Assembly (NCBI GenBank): GCA_907165135.1
Contig: OU015566.1
Coordinates: 13,454,001 to 13,518,000, forward strand
Source of the DNA: Oikopleura dioica
Taxonomy: Eukaryota; Animalia; Chordata
Length of the DNA: 64,000 bases
Direction of reading: 5' to 3'
Below the pieces are notes generated by a model. That model was not told where the DNA came from. It was given only the letters and a program-made list of their open reading frames with translations, and did not search any database. Below, one piece after another: positions 2,600 through 49,814 of this stretch. The position numbers and the translations under genes were made by a program. Within the stretch, counting starts at the first letter, position 1; each line of letters starts with the position of its first letter.

Positions 2600-2774
2600 A
2601 AAACTTCGCCTGTCGTTTTTCAAGCTGCGATCCTTGCAAACATTCGAAAGAATACTGAATAAAAAAACTGAGTTAATTAATCTCATTTTCATCAATTTTC
2701 TCATCAAAATCACCCCGTATTCATCCGAAAACCGCTTATTCAGAATTCGAGTCGAGTAGAATTTCAGATCTGCT

Positions 2775-2899
2775 CCAATTGGTCGCTGCTGGAAAGTCTT
2801 CTGATTCTATTGGCGCGCCTCTCACTCGCGCCACTTTCAATCCGAGCCGAGCAAAATCAGCGTAAATTCTGTTTTTCAGGATTTTATGAATTTTCCGCG
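2775..2899 (+). promoter_or_regulatory. Candidate cell-cycle promoter elements upstream of ANAPC1 (CCAAT boxes, E2F-like sites)
   Basis: CCAATTGG 2775-2782, ATTGGCGCGC 2809-2818 and TTTTCCGCG 2891-2899 lie just upstream of the ANAPC1 start. Motif match only. Confidence 0.3.
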
Positions 2900-2938
2900 A
2901 GAGATATCCAACTTATGACTGAACCAGATTCAGAGAGA

Positions 2939-5900
2939 ATGCTCAAATGTACAGTAACACCGTATAAACCGTCTGGCAAAGCTCTTGCGTCATCATTTTC
3001 TTGTTTGGATCAAATTTTAAAAGGTACAGTGGTGTAGGTGTACAGGCATTCTATTCTTCACGGATTTATGACAATTTTGCCTTTTAGGTGAATCATCTGA
3101 TGAAAAAATTCTGGAAAAAAGCGAAGAATTCAGCGAGGAAAACCACCTGACGCGGGAAAAAGAAAATGGCCGTCTGGAAGAACTCTTCTGGTCCGGAAAC
3201 GCCTGTGTTTTATCCCGAAAGCGGTGCTTTGGAGAGTGGGAAAGAGTCGAAACCTTCACGCGAAAGACGAAAATACTCAAGGCTCTTTGGGCGAATTTTG
3301 AAACTAAAGGAATCAACGAGGAGTGGATCGTTTTGGTGGAAGAATCGGCTTGTACCTTTATCGCGCCTCAAACGGCTATTGTGCCGGTTCAGGAACGGGT
3401 TAAAATTTTCAAAATATGGAGACAAAGTCAGCGGAGTTCAACGCGAAAATTTTGTTTTTGAGGTTTTTGTGGAGATTCTGTTGTTTTCGAAATTTCAGCC
3501 CCTCAAGGAAAAAACTTTTCCGTTCACCATTCAAAACGTTTTCGAGTTTCAACCAAATACTGGGCTGCTCATTACAGTCAAGAAAAGCCGCAGCCCTTCA
3601 TCTGACCGTCTTTCTTCAGTCTACTTTCTCAAGCACCCAGCTGACGAAATCACACCGATCTGGAGCCATGACTTGTCGCCAATTCGAAAAGCTCAGCGTA
3701 TCATCTGGACCGGCTGCGACAAGACTAAACAAAAACTGGTCTGTTTCCAGACCGGGACCGCCCATCGACTGGCGACCCTAGATCGACTGACAGACGAAGA
3801 AAAGCTGATCGCAGAACAGATCGTCGAAAACAACGCTCTGCCTGGCTTTTACTTCGACGGAACAATCAACAACACGACAAATCAAAATCAAAACACGAAA
3901 ACTTCAAAACTAGTCACTCCAAAAGGCCCTCGGCGAGCAGGTCTTCACAGGCAGCAAAAATTATTCGGAACTCCAAAGGATATTCCCTCACCGATGCATT
4001 CCAGGAGATCTTCACTCGACCGGCCTCTTAGTAGAAGACAGTCTACGCTTACTACTCATCGTCTTTTGCCGCGCCAGAACTTGAGTCTTTCTTATTCCCG
4101 ATTCATGGAAGAAACAGTCACTTCCAATCCTGACGCAGCTCTGTGCCTCGTTCGCCCTCGTCTTCTAGCCCGACCTGCTTACGAAGAAGTCTCCTTTCTA
4201 TCCCCGCCCGTGTCTGAAATTTTCATCTCTCGAGATCTCTTCAACAACGAATTCTTCGTATTCCCTTCACAAAACGCTACAGAACTCCTAAACCTATTCA
4301 CAGGAGAGAGGTTCAGAATAGAAGGCCTTGCTTCCGTCGCCAAAATTGACAAGTACATCGCCCGGCTTGGCACAAAAGGAGTCGTCGAAATGTTCAGCGG
4401 ACCGCTTCTCACCATGTCGATAAATATTCCAGATTTGGCGGTGCGGGAAAATGTGTTTTCAACAACAGTAGCGATGGATACTCCAGATGTGAAGCAACAA
4501 CCAAGCACGATGACAGAAAGTACACCAGTAATTGCAGGACGACATCTACCAAAAAGTATTAGTTTTCTATTCTTCGATTAAACCTCATAAGAAATCGTAG
4601 AAAACCAGTAATAAGACAGTCAGGATTGGTAGCTCCGACGACAACATTTTCACCTCTCACTCCTGGATTAGATTTGCGGCGGTCATTATCACAGGATACA
4701 ACAATTACTCCGCGAAAAGAAGAGCTCACTGAGAAAATAGCATCACACGGCAACTCATCACTAAAAGTCACACTTGCCGATGGCTCTTGCCAAATCATTT
4801 CAGGGACTGGTTAGAATTCAAAGTCAGTTTTCTTTTCAATATCAGTAGATGCTCTTTTTCTAACCACGAAAAGTTCGCCTACAGAAAGACTCTATGCGCA
4901 TTATAAGACGGACATTTGAGCTTGTTATCCAGTACTTTTCGAGAAAAGAAGCGCTGAAGATCTACTCCGACTGGCTTATTTACCGTTCTTCGTTTTCAGA
5001 TAACCGGGCTTATACTCACTTTTTGGACTTTATACAGGAGTTATTAGCGGAAGACTCAGGAATGGATTGAAATCAACGAAGAGATCAACCCTTTTTTTAA
5101 ATCTGAAAATCCATCGAAAGCGTCTGACATGCCAGTTGATAAGAAACAAACGAGACAAGCAGAAGAAATACTGAAAGTAGCGAACAATGCGCTAAAATTT
5201 TGGCCTCGATCTTTCGTCGAAAGTGTTCTACCGATAGATAACGACGAGTTCAAGCCTGAGGTGAAGCCGTCTGGGAAGCATAAAGAGTTCTATCGAGTGC
5301 TTTTCTTGGTCCAGGAAGAAATGAGCATATTGGGTTTCGAGGGAAAACGAGTGAAACGATTGAGAAAGTTGTTGGAGAAACTCGCTTATTCAGAAGACTT
5401 CCGGGAGCATTTCAGCGCTGAGAGAAAAGATCGATTAAAAAGACAGATTCCATCGAAGATTCCGAATGTTCAAGACTGTCTTCTAGCTCTCATGCGCAAG
5501 GAGAGTAAAATTATGGCTCTACCCGTCGACATCAATTCTCCACTGTTTCTCCTGGTTTGTCTTTACGGTGCAGCGTTCATGGGTTACGATCCTCGCCAAA
5601 CACGGAACAACTTGTTAACCGACTATCGAGATTTCATTACGCTTGGAAACGCAACCGAGATACCAGTAGTTGCTTCTCAATATGGAGACAGCAAAAGTGT
5701 CAAGCTGAGATTTCTCGCTGATGTTTGCAGCATCTGCAGTCCAGCAGATTGGGACTCTTTTTCGCCAGCCATCAAACTTCCAATCAACATCCTTCTTGAT
5801 GAAATCCGCGATCCAGAAATGACATGGAATTACAGTAGCCGGCGATTGCTGAATCTCAAATACATACTCGGCTTTGTTGAAGAAGAAAACGATCTTGAGC

Positions 5901-39443: not shown

Positions 39444-42400
39444 ATGCTGAGCAGAATACTGGCGTTCCTGGCGCTTAGCGGCGTCAGGGCCCAGGACATC
39501 GACTTTGCCCACGAAAATGGCATCATTCAGCCGAAGAGTTGGAACCTCGCAAAAGGTAAAAGGACCCCTTATTTTATCAGAGCTGGGGAATTTCACGGGT
39601 ATCAGGGGGTGGATGGAACGGCGGCGCGAATTTGAAACCGCCCGGTCAGTCTTGAGCGGGTAATTGCCCTCTCAAATTTCCGGAATTCAAGTTTTTCGGG
39701 AAATTGAAATTGCGAGATTTTGATTGATGAGTGTTCTTTTCTGAACGGGTTGGAAATTGAAAGGGGTGGGAAATAAAGGCAGGGGGATTCAGAGATTGTT
39801 GCCAAAACAAAACTTGCGGGAACGGAAAAATTCGAATTTTGGCATGAGTTTTCGTCTTTCTTGCATAAGGTGATTAGGAAAAGTTCATGTTCAAGTGCCA
39901 AGAAATGCGGTTTTTTCCGGCTTTTGGGAAAGTTTGAAGTTTTCCTTCGCTAATGACTGTTTTGAAGAGTTATTCTAGCGTTTCAAAGTTGAACCCTACT
40001 AGTTGGTAATTACAACCCTTTTTCTCAAGTTCGAGTTTTTAGTTGAAACATGTTTTTGAAAAGCAACTTTTTCGGAACTTTAAAAACTTGGGTTTATTTT
40101 CGCTACATTCTAGTGACATCAATTTGGCACCTTGAAACATATTTTCAAACTTTTCGAAGCTTGAAAATTCGAAAATCTTCTTCGCAAATTTGAATTTGAA
40201 GGCACCGAATTTTTGAAATTCGCCTAATTGGCAGCCGCACGTGTCGTTGCTTTTTTGCTGGTTGAATAATTACCGCTTGCGAGAATGCAAAAACTGGTAA
40301 TTAACGCGTGGTCAAGGTCGATCTAAAATTTTTTTCGGCGTTGTATTTTTCAAAAAAGCTGGTCGATATGAGCTAAGAAAATCGAATATTCTAGCGCTAG
40401 GGTTTTTTCCTTCGAATTTATCTATCAAAATAGGGTCGAAATTTTCGGTTTGGGACCCAAACTTTGGGTTTTGACCCCATATTTGGAAAATATGGGGAAT
40501 TTGAGCCAATCAGAAGACGGTGCTCTTTGTCCAAGGCAATCAGAAGATATATAACCCCCCCATTTATTGGGCCGGTGAAAAATTTGGGTTTTGGGGGGTT
40601 ATATAGCTTCTGATTGGCTTAGATAAAGAACATTGCCTTCTCATTGGCTCAAAATCCCCATACTTTCAAATTTTTCCCTTTTCCGACTAATATTATCCAA
40701 TCAGCAGGTTGGAAGGAAGCTGACTCAAGAATCATCAGAGTACGATTATTCGTAATCACAATCGTATTCTGGCAAGTTCACCTGGTTGGCCGTAATTATA
40801 ATATTCATAGGTGGTCTTTTCATCGCTACAATAAAAAACTAAACTGCTGAATAGTTAAGTGGAAGAAAAGCTACTTTTAGTAATATCGCCAGGTGTTGCT
40901 TTTTTCATCATAAAAAGCTCTGAGAGAGGCCCTTTGCCCTTCTCAACTGCTCCTGGCCCCGGCTGAGCTCGTAAAATTTTAGCGGCTTTTTGATCTCGCC
41001 AAGTTTACGGCTCCATCGCTTGATTTGAAGCGAGTAATTACTCAAAGCGATTTTGGCAGCGCCGGAAAGACATCAACTTTCCAATTCATCAAGTTTAAAA
41101 ATAAGGGACTCGTACTTGGAATTGGAAAATGAATGATTGAAAAAGTTATCATTAAAGGATTTGGGAGTTATTTTCTTGATTGATTGATGAAAAATTTTTG
41201 ATCTTGGGAATTTTCGTTTTTATTAAATTTTCTTTCCGAGCCAGTGATTTTGGATGGCAAATTTATAAAAATTTTGCGCACTGGCCTCCTGCCAATGTGA
41301 AGGCCTTGGTAAAGACGCCTTTGTTGAAAAACTTTTTTCACAATGGCCATTTACTCGGATTCAAACGCCGGACGGAGCACTTCAGCTTTGCGCAAATTTA
41401 ACGAGCTAGTACCGTTTTTCCCCGGTGAAAAGTGCATTTTGAACTTGAAAATTCAAGAAAAGTAGACTCGATTGTTCTGAGCCCCCCAAATTGGAAAATA
41501 ATGACAGAAAATTGGGCAAAATTCGAAATTAACCTTGATCCGCCATGTTTAATTCCGCCTCTAGAATCTAGACACTCGCGCCCGCTAGAATGATGTCACC
41601 TTGATAGCACCGGCTATTTTGCCGACATAACCGGAACTACCAATTGCCCAAAACATAAACCGGCGACTTCAAAGTTTCAAACGCGCCCATGCTAAAACCC
41701 ATTCCTAAGAGGTATTTATCCACCCAGATAACTAAGTACAACAAGCGAGCTCGATTTCCCAGGGACTTTCTCACTCTCTCTCTCTTTCTATTCAAAAGCG
41801 CCCTGCCCTGGAGCGTGTTTATTCAATTTTTTGTCTAAAAAACGGAATGATAACTCAAGCTTGAGCCCTGGCACTTTTCACAGACGCGTTTTTTCCTCAA
41901 GTTCATCTGAGGAATTTGAGTGTGACGCCCTTATTTTGCCCCTAATTAAAATTTTGCCCCCTAAACTTTCATTTCAGTCGCAACTGTAACTGCCAACGCG
42001 ACTTGCGGAGAAGACAACGCTGATCAATACTGCACTCTTTACTTCAACACCTGCGGAACTTGCATCGCCAACGGCAGAGATGGCCACCCGGTGGAAAACG
42101 TCGTCGACGGAACTGAAAGTTTCTGGATGTCCCCTCCTCTCAGCAGAGGCGAGCAGAACAACAAGGTCACACTCACCTTCGATCTCAAGCAACCCTTTCA
42201 CATTGCCTACGTCGTGATCAAGTACGCAATCTCTCCGAGAGCGAAGACCTGGGTTTTGGAACGATCAGTTGACGGAGAAAACTGGGACGCGTGGCAGTAC
42301 TTTTCTCAGGATCGATCGCAGTGCCGCACTTTGTTCGATAAAGTTCCAACTGCTGATGGAGAGTACGATTCCGACAGCGATGTAATCTGCACCGATGAAT

Positions 42401-45400
42401 ACACCGAAATCAACCCGGGCCAAGGCGGAGAAGTCGTCGTTTCATTGGTGAATGGTCGACCATCTCAGGACTCTTTCTCCACTTCCATCGAGTTGCAAGA
42501 ATTCACCCGAGCCACGAAGATCCGAATCCGTCTTCTCGAGGTCAACACTCACTACGGTCACTTCATGTCTGCCGGCGACAACGATCCAAAAGTCTTCCAG
42601 CGTTATTTCTACGCGATCAAAGACGTCGAAATCGGCGGCCGATGCGTCTGCAATGGCCACGCCGACAACTGCGTAGAAAAAGACGGCGAGTACCACTGCG
42701 AGTGCCAGCACAACACGACCGGACGAAACTGCGATCAGTGCGCGGCGAATCATGTTCAGAAAAAGTGGCGACCTGGAACTCCTGGAAACCCGAACGAGTG
42801 CGAACGATGCAACTGCAACGGACACACTGAGACTTGCTTTTATGATGAAAATGTTGATGCCAACAAGCAGAGTATGGATTTGGCCATGAACTATGAGGGC
42901 GGTGGAGTGTGCCAGAACTGCGGAGATAATACTGAAGGAAATAACTGCGAACGATGCAAGCCTGGATTCTGGAGACCTCATGATGCCCCTCTTAGTGATC
43001 CTTGCCTTCGTAAGTTTTCAGCCAATCAAAATGGAGAATTTTGATAATAAGCGAATCAAAACCACTGATTTTAAAATTAAAAATAAGCCAATAAGATTCG
43101 TCTGCTTTTTCGAAGAGCTTTTTTTGGCTCAAAAATTTGATCTTGACCCCCATTCTTGCGTCGGCAATTCATCAAGCTGCCAATAAAATCGACTGCGCAT
43201 GCATTATGCACCGGGTCTTGCTTGCCATGTCGGAAGTCATTTCCCACGTGAGCTCTATAATTAGCCTCCTCTCGCTCTCACACGTGACCCGCGTCCAGCC
43301 CGCGCTCGTAAATTCTAGCAGGGCGCACGTGTGAGCCGAAAAAATGGCTAAGTTGACCGATTTATAATTATAATTGCGCATAATTGTAAATTTAACCCTC
43401 CTTTTCTAAAAATTACCAGCTGAAAGTAATCCTCTTTTCTTCTAGCCTGCGACTGCGAGGAAGCCCATTCCGAAGGAACCTGCAATCCACACACTGGACA
43501 ATGCAACTGCGCTCCAAACTACGGTGGAAAACAGTGCAACACTTGCGCGCCCAAGATCTTTTACTATCCAAAATGCGACCGTGAATTCCGTAAGTACTCT
43601 TCCTTGATTCCAGAAAATCTCCAAAACGAGCGAACTCGCTCCTTTGCCTTTTCTCGGATCAAGTGTGAATCAAACTGAAATTGCTGATGAATAGCTCTGA
43701 CTGTATAAATAGAACTTCCTGCGGGTTTTGACTACAGTAGCTTCCCAACTGGTACAGTACACGCGTAGTCTTTCGTCAAATTTGGCAACAACTTTCCGTT
43801 TCTCAGCCAAATTTCTTCATAAACAACAATTTTTCTCTTCGCCTTTTTTGAAAAATATATCGACTTTGATATTGATCTAATTACCCACCAATTAACCCAT
43901 CGTAACAATAACCGTAAATGAGAAAGAAAAAGTCGTGACTTTGACATTTGGGGAAATGTCAAATGTCATTGGCTTTTGAACTTCAACCTTGAAAGGGTTT
44001 CAATTTACGCAAAGACGTTTCATTTTCGACATCGTTAAAATAAGGGGCCTCTTCTTGCTTCCGGGAGGAAGTCGTTAAAGAGCATTACCGGGTGGGAAGA
44101 AAGGGTTGGACATTTAATGGACAAGAAATTCTGTATAAAAATTATGTAACCGCATCATGAGAACAGTTTGCGGTATCTTAGGAAAACAAAAAAGAAATAC
44201 CGACTTTGAAATTCATCCTCCGATTGAATTTCCCTAATCCCATCTTTTCTTGTTTCTTTTTCAAAATCTCTTTCAATAGACCTTGAGATTTTGCCCATTT
44301 TATCCCCCGAAATCATTCTCAAACTGATTCTAGAGTGTGATGAATGCTCCGAAGCCCTCCTCGACCGAATCTTCCCCGAGACTGACAAGGTCACCCAGAC
44401 CATGACTCAGCTCAACAACGTCATCACTTCCAAGCTCACTCAGACCAAGTTCGATACTCTCGCTCAGGGCAAGGATGATATCGAGCGATCAATCTCTCTC
44501 ATCAACGAAGGAATGGATCTCTACAACAACCACGATGCCAAAATGAGCTTCTTGCAAAAGGACATTTGCGGAAAAGACGGTGAACTAGCACACTGGGTTT
44601 CTGTCTTTATGGCGACCAAGGCTGCTTTCAATAAAACCATTCAAGGTAATCAAGCTTCCGCGAACCCTTTTTCATCCTTTTCAGACGGCAACAAGCTCCA
44701 GCAAGAGTTCGAGCAACAAGCTATCCGAGCTGAAACAATCTTGAACGATTTCAAAGACGTCCAAAACATGTCTCCAACTGAGTACGAGCGAAGAATGAAG
44801 GACGCCCGACGAGAAGTGCAGGAGCTCCAGCAAATCTACGCTTCGAACGTCTACTTGCCTCTTTTGAACTCTGCCGAGGCCGAGCGAGATGAAGCCGTAG
44901 ATCTGCTCAATGTTGTCAAAGAGCGATTCGGAGGTGGAGAAACAACCGGACGATGCCATTCCAACCACCAGCCAGTAGATTTCTACAGCCAACGACTTCA
45001 CCCAGCAACAAAGGATAACTTCAAGTTTACACCTGGAGATATCAACGCCATCGACATCGATGGAACCTACCGACCAGTTGCTGTTGAAGAGCCAGATTAC
45101 GACACTTACGATTCTGAGGACTACTCCGTTGACGACTTTGAAGATGACTACAGTGATGATGGTTACGATGTTGACGAAGATGCTGTTGTTCCTGATGTCA
45201 TCGATCCTGAAGATTATTCTGATTACACGTAACTTGTTGTTTCTGAAACTTGTACTTATCCTTCTTTCTAGCGAGGATGTCTATGAAGCGCCAAAGAAAA
45301 TCGATCCTCTTGGACTCGAACTCATCGACAGCCCCTCAACTTACGAGAACGCCCGATGCCCAACTGATAAACAGCTCGCTATCATTCCCGATGAGAACTC

Positions 45401-48400
45401 AAGAACCATCGTCGAGGAAATTCTCCGCGGCAGCAATGTCAAAGAGGCAATTATCGGCCTCAAAGCTACTGCTTCTGTTCCTCCAGATTCGTGGAAATGG
45501 GTAAGAATCGGCGTTTCAAAACATTTTTCAAATCAAATTATAGGAATCTCCTCGATGGAGAAGCATTCCCGTCGATATGACAATGTTCGCTGAGCCTTCA
45601 AATGATCCGACGAAGAAGTGCGTCACAATGACCAAACGAGGTTTTGTCGCTGAGAAGTGTACCGATGAGCTTGAGCACTTTGTCTGCCTCGGAAAAGGTA
45701 ATAATTTCATTATTTATGCTCATAAATCCAATCTATCCTAGATATCGATCAGAAATGGCGATTCTTTATCGAAAAGAACACTGATGGCCTCAACTACAAC
45801 GGCGCTCAATTTGCTTGTAACTCTTCTAGCATCCAGGGTTCGCCCAGAATCGGAGCAGTTATTCATATTCCAAAGACTTTCATGTAAGATCTTCTCATTT
45901 TTATGGGCTTCAATAAAAAATTTTTCAGGATCATGAAACGATTCATGGAAGACCAAAAGCCTCCCGTCAACAAGGCATGGATTGGTCTTCGATCTCATGA
46001 TGCCATGGCTGATGTTCGATGGCGATGGGCCAATGGAATGGGCTGGAACTCGGCCCTTCTTGACGCTGTTGACATCAACAAGATGAACAAAGACGTTGTC
46101 AACGACGGTAAAACTTGCCTCGCTGTCAGCCAAAACAATGGAAACGTAAGTCAACACCAGCACCCGTCAAACTCTAATTGATAAATTTAAGATTGAATGG
46201 AAAGCTGTCCGATGCGATGAGCCAAGACCATACCTTTGTGGTCGAAACCCACCACCAAACTCGTATTCTCCAGCTCTTTCCCGAAGCAAGCGAAATCTGC
46301 CCGTTCTTGTCAACTCTCTCCGTCGAGTCACTAGAAACTCCCTCGATGATCTCAACGCTGTCCAGGACCGACCTCAGTACAGCTACACTGAACTCGCTCC
46401 CAACAGTAATTTAATCATGGTTAACGATTATCGACCAGGTGGTGACTACCCTCTCACTTCCAACCTCGTTGATCAACTTGAATGCGTCGAATACATAACA
46501 AACAAAGCTTCGAGCACTCACAAGAAGCTCTCCTCGCTGGAAAACCGAATCCACGACGCGGAAGACATCAACGCTGAAACCGGAGCTCTCGTAAATAAAC
46601 TCGAAGAGGATCTCAAAGAAGTCTATGACGACATCGAGCTTATCCACGATGTCAACAGAAACATCCAAGCGGGTTTTGACGCTAATGATGACACTGAGGA
46701 TCTTGCTGACAGCGCCAGTGCCGCTCTTGACGAGCTCGAAGACTACGATTCGATCGACTTCCGAATCCCAGAGATTATCGAGCGAACTGAAGATCTCAAG
46801 GACCACGACTGGCCAGAAATCGAAAAGCAAGTTGGCGATGCTCGTCTTCGAGCAAAACTTCTCCACGACAAGTATCTCGAGCTTCTCAAGATCTTCAGCA
46901 TTGCCGATGGCGCTTGCACCTACCATGATAACGGAAAGGTCACTTGTGACGATGTTCCCGGTCTCCACAACTTGGCCGCCATTCTCTACAATGCTGCGAA
47001 GATGATCGCCGAGGGTGAAAGGGCACTTGAAAATACCGATGCACAACTCAGCCGATTCGATGGAAACCGTGACATGTACACTGAGCCATGCGATGCCGGA
47101 GAAGCCCCAGATTTCAGCTCCTTCGAACAATTAAACAAGACCTGGCACGGAATTCAGGAAGATATTGCCTTCCTGGACCTTGCTAATCTCAAGGACTACA
47201 CGTACACCGACGAAGATATTGCTCGACTTGATGCTATCGGTGCCAAGATCAAGGCTGTCTATGATGATCTCAAAGACATCTACCGAGGCAAAACTCCTCC
47301 AGATATTGCTGAAGGCGATTATGCCAATCTCTGGGGCTTGGAAGGCGCTGTTCAGTTCATGAAGAATCCTGGCTGCTGGTACAAGGATGAAGTTTGTGAG
47401 TACGACGTTACTGATGATGTTGAGCTCAAACAATGGTTCGACAAATACAAGGAAATCATAGACGACGCTATTGCCAAGGCTGAAGAGACTCTCAACAATG
47501 GTTCGATTGTAAACACGCTGAGCAGTGCGCGTCAAATCTACGATGGATATATCGCGCCAGAACAGAACATTGCCGCGGAAGTAGGCGAGAGCCTTTCAGA
47601 GCTGGATGATCAAATCATGGAAATCCAACACTTGATCGAGTCGACAAAATCTCTCCTCCAGCGAGTTCCACTTGAAAAAACCGCGCAAAAACTTTCCGAG
47701 TCTGAGCGTATCTCGCCAAGCGTCGGTGAACTTGCTGACAGCCGATTCCACTTTGAAATCGAAGCCAATGTACGACTTCAGCGAGGTGAAAACAACATCC
47801 TTTCTTTCGGAAATGATGACTCTTTCGTCACCATCGACACTGAACAAAAACATGCTGTGGCGACTTTTGTCAATGCCAACGCCGAGTTTGAGCTCCGATC
47901 AAGCATGCCAATCAACAACGGATTTTTCTACAATATCAAGTTTGCCAAGATGGGTCGACGAATCGAGCTCATCACTACTTGCGCTCAAGATGATTGCGGA
48001 TCTGCCGATGGTGGTGCTGATGGCGATCGAGAAGATCAACGTCGACGACGTCGTCACAACCGAAGAAAGCGTCTTTCTCGACGAGTTTCTCGCGCTGCTG
48101 ATGCTAGCACTCCCAGTGTCATGTTCCTCGACCCCGAGTACGCTATTTGGGATGACTTCAACAACAACAACAAGCTCATAATCGGTGACTACGGCGATGA
48201 AGCTATCTTCGGCGGTCTCCAGGGAGAACTCAACGGTGTCAGAATCAACGGCCGAATGGTCTACATCTGGGACTTGGACATCGAAACAATGGAACCAGAG
48301 GACAAAAAATTCGACATTGTCTCTGATGCTCTCGTCGAGCCAGCGAAGTGCTGGGCCGATAACAACGGAAAATTCCGAGACCAGGAGGAACTCAACAGCC

Positions 48401-49814
48401 TCGACTGTCCTTGCCTTTCCGGCAAATCATCTTACTTCGAGATCGAGCAAAAATCAATTGATCTCAGTTATTTGAGCAAGATCCGTGGTACAATTCAGTA
48501 CACCGAGCATGGCAACGCTGATAACTATGTCGTGGCCGCGCTCTTTGGTGGAAATTCTTACCTCCTCGTTGAAAAGCGAAATACTGTTTTGACGCTGAGA
48601 ATTGCCACTGGCTACAGAGAAGATGCTAATGGAGATCAAGTGGTCGATCTTGACTTTGACTACACTGCGGAATGGGATTACTCGCCATCGACTTTTGATG
48701 ATATCAGCACTATCCGATTCGGCTTGCAAAAGAAGGTAAGATCAAAATAATTTTTTCAAATATCTCTTGAATTTATCAAAATACTCATTATTTTTCAAGA
48801 GTTCTGGCCCTGCAGAGATTTACGAAGGCAAAATTCTCCAATATTCTGATCTCTACCGACCATCAGCTGAAAAGCTTCAAGCTCTTGACAAAAAGTTCAC
48901 CTTCACCATCCCCAAGTTCCAGTTCGACATTTTGAAGGACGATCTCGACCAGGAATCGATGTACTTTGGTGGTATCCCACAATACCGACTTGAACCAAGA
49001 ATGAAGAGAGTTCTCACCAGACTCGGTCTCATCGACGATCTTGGCCAGGGAGGAGTTCGAGTCAAGTCCATGCCTGCCTGCTTCAGCCGATTGAATATCA
49101 ACTCTGACGATATCAACAAGAAGGGCGAGAACAGATTCGTCAATGTCCTCGACGGCGCTGGCATCTACCGACACAACCGAGAACCGGACAACAAAGATAT
49201 CCGAGTTCAAACCGGACGCAACTTGGAATCAAACACAACAATTGCTCTTCCTGTCGGACTCAATGCCAAGGAAATGGTTGGAGACAAAGAATTCTCTTTC
49301 GGTAAGCAAAATTCAAATGATCGATAGGCTAAATCCTTCTTCAGGTCTTTCGATTGAGTCGCTATCCGACGCTAGAATCTTCAAATTCGCCAACGGCGAA
49401 GTCAAGGTCGAAGATGGCAACCTTATCTTCGACATCAACTCGGTTTCGTACAATGGTGGCGCTGTTCTTGCCACTGGTGATCCCTCCTCCACGGTCCTTG
49501 TCATCATGAATGTTGTTGGTGGAAACACTGAACTCTTCATCCTCGGCGAAAAATCCGATTTCAGCGCAGTTGCTGACGGTCAAGTCGCTGACTTCTCCGA
49601 CATGGAGCTCGGTGGAACTAATCCTGGCGGCGAAGCCTTCGAAGGAGTCATTCTACAGCCACGTCTGCAGACGATTGGACAGTCGCAGCGATACTTGAGC
49701 AACTTCAGATGCAAATCACCGCGTCAGAATCCAAAACGAACACGACTCCAGCGCGAGCAAGACGACACTTACAATTGCAACAGAATGCAGTTCAACTATT
49801 ATTACGAAGAATAA
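39444..49814 (+). CDS. LAMA3/5: Laminin alpha3/5-like chain with inserted C-type lectin domains (SP-LN-LE x3-coil-acidic-CTLD x2-coil-LG1-3)
   Basis: Exons 39444-39555, 41978-43009, 43446-~43589, (possible micro-exon ~43716-43753), 44334-45228, 45272-45500, 45544-45697, 45742-45883, 45929-46145, 46192-48735, 48800-49301, 49345-49814; all introns GT-AG and in phase. LN motifs WNLAK..[54 protein letters not shown]. Confidence 0.9.
40481..40670. mobile_element. Palindromic MITE carrying CCAAT-like boxes, in laminin intron 1
   Basis: About 80-bp arms TATGGGGA.TTTGAGCCAAT.AGAAG...CAATCAGAAG.TATATAACCCCCC mirrored around a short spacer. Confidence 0.8.

Follow-up and report, generated by a model that had tools for sequence, protein, structure and literature searches.

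The DNA analysed here, a 64,000-nt stretch of the Oikopleura dioica genome (contig OU015566.1, positions 13,454,001 to 13,518,000; the window), carries on its + strand a laminin alpha gene of 12 exons, which encodes a protein of 2133 amino acids (aa) between positions 39444 and 49814 of the window. The protein opens with an LN domain and LE repeats, continues into the coiled coil of the laminin long arm and ends in a region resembling LG domains; its coiled coil is split into two parts, CC1 and CC2, by an insert of about 440 aa in which two C-type lectin-like domains (CTLD1 and CTLD2) are flanked by long linkers. Taken as a whole, we consider it probable that this is a secreted, miniaturised chain of the laminin alpha-3/5 type with a CTLD-split rod, a CTLD pair mounted on the side of that rod and a probable cleavage site.

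The gene model was guided by L006, one of two metagenome contigs of the Joint Genome Institute (JGI) found by scanning with an alignment of the region that follows the lectin-like domains. L006 (6633 nt) is intron-free and mRNA-like, and a single open reading frame (ORF) of 2131 aa, reaching from LN to LG, runs through it between a 5' UTR of 98 nt and a 3' UTR of 139 nt; the contig ends just past an AATAAA signal. The second contig, L007 (3437 nt), comes from a different sample, is 99.5% identical to L006 in nucleotides and is open along its entire length. The window protein is 86.5% identical to that of L006, and every intron predicted in the window gene is absent from L006, exactly at the predicted junction. 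The original prediction had a laminin reading frame pass from coiled coil through five short GT-AG introns and back into coiled coil, and this was confirmed by splicing and by the junctions of L006 and L007: GT-AG borders are found at all 11 introns, the frame stays open across the seven exons from 44334 to 48735, and the five introns between 45228 and 46192, GT-AG in each case, measure 43, 43, 44, 45 and 46 nt. Intron 1 (39556-41977) is about 2.4 kb long; the remaining ten span 39-744 nt, the six in the lectin region 39-46 nt.

Both lectin-like units lie within the single ORF of intron-free contigs. A gene-model artefact, either a lectin gene nested between two laminin halves or two neighbouring genes fused, might be suspected from the unusual architecture and from a whole-protein Pfam scan that misses Lectin_C. 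This explanation is effectively refuted by the continuous 2131-aa ORF on intron-free contigs from two samples, which include 45272-46145, by exon 10, which is shared by CTLD2 and CC2, by the same junction in relatives, and by public O. dioica gene models that have the same architecture. The locus is one gene with one mRNA for a laminin alpha chain. A different alternative is that the CTLD exons are optional and that some transcripts skip them, giving an ordinary uninterrupted alpha chain. Exons 6 to 9 are each 1 mod 3 in length, so that skipping three would keep the frame, and the window strain has no transcript reads of its own; yet L006 and L007 both include all four CTLD exons, joint skipping of the four (742 nt in total) would cause a frameshift, constitutive exons 5 and 10 encode both linkers and the end of CTLD2, and the ratio of nonsynonymous to synonymous substitution (dN/dS) is 0.02. 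Optional use of these exons is highly improbable. Since the four cannot be skipped together in frame, and since the last strand and last two cysteines of CTLD2 are encoded on exon 10 together with CC2, the CTLDs appear to be constitutive.

The position of the insert was determined by profile comparison (hhalign) with 22 canonical alpha-3/5-type chains from vertebrates, two ascidians, echinoderms, a hemichordate, a brachiopod, molluscs, arthropods and a nematode. CC1 (aa 431-612) aligns with residues 2149-2333 of Myotis LAMA5 (P0111; E 8e-8, score 67, against best scores of 24, 31 and 32 for column-shuffled, heptad-block-shuffled and reversed controls), and CC2 (aa ~1054-1457) with residues 2340-2715 (E 9e-12, score 109, against 22, 48 and 80 for the same controls). 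CC1 starts with C-D-E-C, which falls in the alignment on the C-D-H-C at the start of the canonical rod, and CC2 ends with the motif directly before LG1. Only about six residues of canonical sequence separate the two parts, at a point inside Pfam Laminin_I (LAMA5 2174-2430); a weak, below-cut-off match of CC1 to positions 27-164 of the Laminin_I profile is consistent with this placement. The intervening aa 613-1055 have no counterpart in canonical chains. Without the insert the rod measures 587 aa, against 561-612 aa in the canonical chains, and the junction region is 50-51 residues long in all 22 of them. Since CC1 and CC2 map to abutting canonical stretches, the alignments place the insert at a single point of the rod, within Laminin_I and about 185 residues from the rod start. 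The flanks of the CTLDs are thus homologous to the laminin alpha rod, and the claim that the lectin-like domains sit inside the long-arm coiled coil stands.

Among PDB sequences the exon 10 profile matched generic coiled coils only; a crude heptad score gave no discrimination, and ESM-Atlas was uninformative on CC1. A coincidence of the insertion with the hinge of laminin-332 was considered and rejected, since the rod's C-terminal end is ~220 aa away from the hinge (PMC10888245) and ~380 aa away from the insertion. Between 46900 and 47400, CC2 carries three conserved cysteine features, namely a C-x9-C loop, a lone cysteine and N-P-x-C-W-x5-C.

The N-terminal end of the protein bears out its description as a laminin alpha chain. 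There Pfam reports Laminin_N and EGF_laminin repeats, forming a short arm of LN and ~3.5 LE repeats whose best match among solved structures is laminin alpha-5, well ahead of alpha-1, netrin-1, gamma-1 and beta-1. Pfam Laminin_G gave no match in the window protein's C-terminal third. A profile that includes distant relatives aligns this region with LAMA5 2718-3094, corresponding to LG1-2 (hhalign E 8e-10), and a Foldseek search with an AlphaFold model of low confidence (predicted local distance difference test, pLDDT, 42) placed LG1-3 of laminin-111, alpha-2 and laminin-511 on top (best 3e-11), with LG/LNS domains making up nearly all of the first 50 matches. Relatives show weak Laminin_G_2 and Laminin_II matches, Laminin_II being the only Pfam family common to all six relatives compared. 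The region can hold only about three LG domains, against five in canonical chains; the C-terminus seems to be LG1-3-like and the chain to have no LG4-5. The first LG-like domain contains a polybasic loop, a run of arginines followed by R-R-K-R, which distant relatives retain and which the model shows as disordered, and which recalls the furin processing of vertebrate laminin alpha chains in their LG region.

Pfam Lectin_C matches CTLD2 (aa 843-979) at 30.3 bits and the CTLD pair at 40.9 bits in two stretches, the cut-off being 22.6. All phmmer matches of CTLD2 in the PDB were CTLDs, as were the 42 of 42 PDB chains matched by a five-row CTLD2 profile; botrocetin and factor IX/X-binding proteins lead (2e-6 to 4e-6), followed by Reg4, NKR-P1, DEC-205 and PLA2R. 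With four canonical cysteines and A-W-I-G-L, CTLD2 is clearly, as far as its sequence tells, a C-type lectin-like domain. The assignment of CTLD1 as a diverged CTLD is supported less strongly: cysteines C744, C817, C830 and C838 and the A-I-I-G-L, W-K-W and helix-1 motifs occur in canonical order, the domain aligns collinearly with CTLD2 (BLASTP E 0.004; Smith-Waterman z 5.6, a score reached in 4 of 2000 shuffles; hhalign E 9e-4), and 90 of the 100 ESM-Atlas clusters nearest to it by language-model features are Lectin_C. Both proposed CTLD-like units are therefore present. The further proposal that they are glycan-binding modules, possibly linking the chain to the appendicularian house, fared differently. 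CTLD2 has neither EPN/QPD nor WND in its translation and alignments, and CTLD1 retains E-P-S-N-D, but A-E replaces the N-D of WND. With the calcium- and sugar-binding residues missing, and with protein-binding snake-venom CTLDs and Reg proteins as the nearest solved relatives, sugar binding is not supported; the link to the house has no support and is pure speculation. An antisense ORF of 141 aa (45738-46163, minus strand) overlaps the CTLD2 exons and in all likelihood arose by chance opposite coding sequence.

Between the window and L006 synonymous sites are saturated (proportion of synonymous differences, pS, ~0.6), and both CTLDs are under strong purifying selection, with dN/dS of ~0.02 (see the table). 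Conservation of the arrangement extends further. Searched against 1.84 billion representative proteins, exon 10 found 15 relatives only, at most 35% identical and all short marine-metagenome fragments. Three relatives reach the lectin boundary (P0004 on contig L001, the Tara contig L002, and P0011 on contig L004), and in each the end of CTLD2 is joined to the same linker and rod, their contigs being too short to reach CTLD1 or LN; L002 shares two introns with the window gene, in position as well as in phase. When P0004 and the CTLD pair were run in word-indexed protein searches, only the query itself or fragments came back. Since the junction of CTLD2, linker and rod is kept in these distant relatives (30-35% identical), the arrangement from CTLD2 to CC2 should predate a deep split among these planktonic animals.

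Features of the laminin alpha gene. Positions are those of the window; identity (% of aa) and dN/dS are for the window compared with L006.
Feature	Position	Strand	Identity; dN/dS	Evidence
Exons 1 to 6	39444-39555; 41978-43009; 43446-43589; 44334-44645; 44685-45228; 45272-45500	+		
Exons 7 to 12	45544-45697; 45742-45883; 45929-46145; 46192-48735; 48800-49301; 49345-49814	+		
Exon 1: start codon and signal peptide	39444..39555	+		tblastn of L006 ORF, GT donor placement
Exon 2: LN domain and first LE repeats	41978..43009	+	98; 0.024 (LN domain)	Pfam Laminin_N 3.4e-56, EGF_laminin; PDB laminin alpha-5 LN-LE 6.4e-104
Exon 3: last LE repeat	43446..43589	+		Pfam EGF_laminin 2.6e-9
CC1, first coiled-coil part, aa 431-612 (intron 44646-44684)	44334..44920	+		hhalign to Myotis LAMA5 2149-2333
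Linker 1, aa 613-724 (intron 45229-45271)	44921..45299	+		spliced translation; canonical laminins have no counterpart
CTLD1, aa 725-842 (intron 45501-45543)	45300..45697	+	94; 0.024	four cysteines, alignment to CTLD2, ESM-Atlas
CTLD2, aa 843-979 (introns 45884-45928 and 46146-46191)	45742..46242	+	97; 0.020	Pfam Lectin_C 7.8e-7; PDB profile
Linker 2, aa 980-1055, best-conserved segment	46243..46470	+	98.7; 0.010	alignment of relatives, comparison with L006
R-S-K-R, site of proprotein-convertase type	46282..46293	+		L-S-R-x-K-R kept in window, L006, P0004, P0002, P0011
CC2, rest of coiled coil, aa 1056-1460	46471..47685	+	77; 0.030	hhalign to LAMA5 2340-2715
LG-like C-terminal region and stop codon (introns 48736-48799 and 49302-49344)	47686..49814	+	79-80; ~0.10	hhalign to LAMA5 2718-3094; Foldseek
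Polybasic loop in first LG-like domain	48040..48096	+		kept in P0001, P0002, P0003, P0005; low pLDDT

The nearest database proteins are the O. dioica orthologues CBY32737.1 (E4YB00) and CBY10267.1/CBY35717.1 (E4XI66), entered as 'unnamed protein product' or 'uncharacterized protein'. Their identity is 94% to L006 and 84% to the window protein, and they have the same lectin-like region and architecture. The precomputed Pfam annotation of these entries lists Laminin_N and EGF_laminin with Lectin_C missing, as does the scan of the whole 2131-aa protein; single exons give Pfam matches that are too weak. The gene has been public since 2010, labelled only as uncharacterised, and its architecture is unrecognised in public data. 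The literature searched contained no paper citing the public accessions of this gene and none describing a laminin with CTLDs, and a hidden Markov model of CTLD2 found nothing comparable in the ~120 further laminin alpha chains retrieved, among them those of ascidians, in line with the expectation that no other laminin is known to bear CTLDs. Identity with the Od-laminin alpha-1 of Kugler et al. 2011 (PMC3034685) was rejected, the primers having no match to L006 within 3 mismatches.

The insert itself suggests how the chain might be built. Linker 1 is ~110 aa long and linker 2 76 aa. A stretch of ~50 aa in linker 1 (45074-45228) is acidic, with many tyrosines flanked by Asp or Glu, and looks like a cluster of tyrosine-sulfation sites. 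Two lone cysteines, 624 in linker 1 and the invariant 1060 near the start of CC2, flank the insert. The R-S-K-R sequence, 13 residues beyond the last cysteine of CTLD2, is part of an L-S-R-x-K-R motif kept in five lineages, the relatives being ~30-50% identical, and is likely a proprotein-convertase site; its conservation suggests cleavage after CTLD2. CC1 and CC2 would both pair with beta and gamma chains, and the length of the linkers suggests that the CTLD pair hangs on flexible tethers beside a continuous long arm. Looping of the insert out of the trimer, as originally proposed, is plausible, and the loop may be cut open at the conserved R-x-K-R, probably by a furin-type protease. The two alpha fragments would then be held only via the beta-gamma rod, perhaps also by cysteines 624 and 1060, which could staple the base of the insert or bond to partner chains. 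Since the CTLDs have no calcium- or sugar-binding residues, they more likely bind a protein or non-canonical ligand, acting as a built-in lateral linker; since the chain seems to have no LG4-5, the insert may replace a lateral binding function. A more specific version, in which the side-mounted CTLD pair and a sulfatable tether at one-third of the rod replace LG4-5 anchoring while furin splits the alpha chain into fragments held by beta and gamma, is tentative and rather doubtful. If true, it would show that assembly of the triple coiled coil is possible with an alpha strand in two pieces.

The same conserved R-x-K-R site could instead mark the border between two products, cleavage at R-S-K-R freeing a netrin-like or LaNt-like soluble lectin (LN-LE-helix-CTLD) and leaving only a trimerising CC2 and LG portion that has no short arm. 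Conservation falls sharply exactly at the start of CC2, a step that could reflect halves acting separately, and CC2 opens with an invariant cysteine of its own. Against this, the first third of the canonical rod has in CC1 a collinear homologue that starts with a C-x-x-C interchain motif, the total rod length is canonical, and a CC2 of 405 aa alone would leave the partner chains unpaired over ~185 residues. Two separate products are therefore unlikely, and the side-mounted CTLD pair on a continuous long arm is the preferred reading.

Several points weigh against that reading. Trimer formation, cleavage and the ligand have each been inferred. CTLD1 (aa 725-842), searched alone, matched neither Pfam nor the PDB, and an AlphaFold model of the CTLD pair built from a 4-row alignment reached a mean pLDDT of 37.5, at which its Foldseek matches are meaningless. 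Identity to L006, 94-99% between LN and linker 2, drops to 77-80% in CC2 and everything after it. The high score of the CC2 profile in reverse, 80 against 109, means that the CC2 score partly reflects generic coiled-coil likeness and that the exact register of CC2 is soft. It is a close relative, rather than the strain of the window itself, that supplies the transcript-level evidence: three oligo-dT RNA runs under the same species label and a metatranscriptome gave 1-2 reads per run over 42950-48949 at 95% likeness, a strict threshold for strains ~15% diverged. Given so few reads, and an identity of no more than 84% to the public proteins, the window and the sequenced O. dioica strains seem to belong to different cryptic lineages.

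Few architectures in animals are as conserved as that of laminin. Across the 22 alpha-3/5 chains compared, from nematode to mammal, rod length varies little and nothing is inserted at this site, a pattern that the window chain breaks. The chain is a new structural variant of the laminin family, for which the architectural part of the original prediction was correct and the functional part (glycan, house) is unsupported. It suggests that a heterotrimeric coiled coil tolerates a large lateral insertion, offers a natural test case for the threading of an alpha strand into a beta-gamma dimer, and points to lineage-specific wiring of basement membranes in appendicularians, whose matrix toolkit is extremely reduced.

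Among known systems, laminin alpha-5/alpha-3B (Myotis LAMA5, P0111; PDB 2Y38, 5XAU) shares with the window chain the LN/LE arm, the C-x-x-C rod start, a collinear rod of canonical length, basic processing-type sites in the LG region and, it seems, LG1-3-like domains. The window chain differs in its short arm, which has no L4, in its roughly three LG-like domains, in the 440-aa insert with two CTLDs and in the small cysteine loops of CC2. The snake-venom C-type lectin-like and Reg proteins (1FVU, 1IOD, 2KV3) are the nearest solved structures to CTLD2 (2e-6 to 1e-3) and bind ligands without a calcium/sugar site; they are small free proteins of low identity, and as regards function the comparison goes no further than the term 'non-canonical CTLD'. 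The laminin rod is a continuous three-chain coiled coil whose only named interruption is the short Cys-rich L-beta of the beta chain, and the globular domains L4 and LF have their insertion sites in the short arms and not the rod (Hohenester review, PMC6744579). L4 and LF resemble the CTLD pair as globular domains inserted in a repetitive laminin rod without breaking it, but are sited inside an LE repeat and not in the triple coiled coil. L-beta, a non-helical stretch in the long arm's first half, sets a precedent for such an interruption, and the cysteine features of CC2, unusual for an alpha-chain coiled coil, resemble L-beta; it comprises ~30 residues of the beta chain, whereas the window insert places ~440 residues with folded domains in the alpha chain. 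From beta-1 coordinates we take L-beta to lie within a few nm of the window insertion. In collectins and tetranectin there is one C-terminal CTLD per chain, directly after the neck and usually with EPN/QPD and WND, whereas the window protein has two tandem CTLDs on long linkers, in one chain only and without these motifs; common to both is a CTLD that is, or in the laminin would be, physically coupled to a three-stranded coiled coil.

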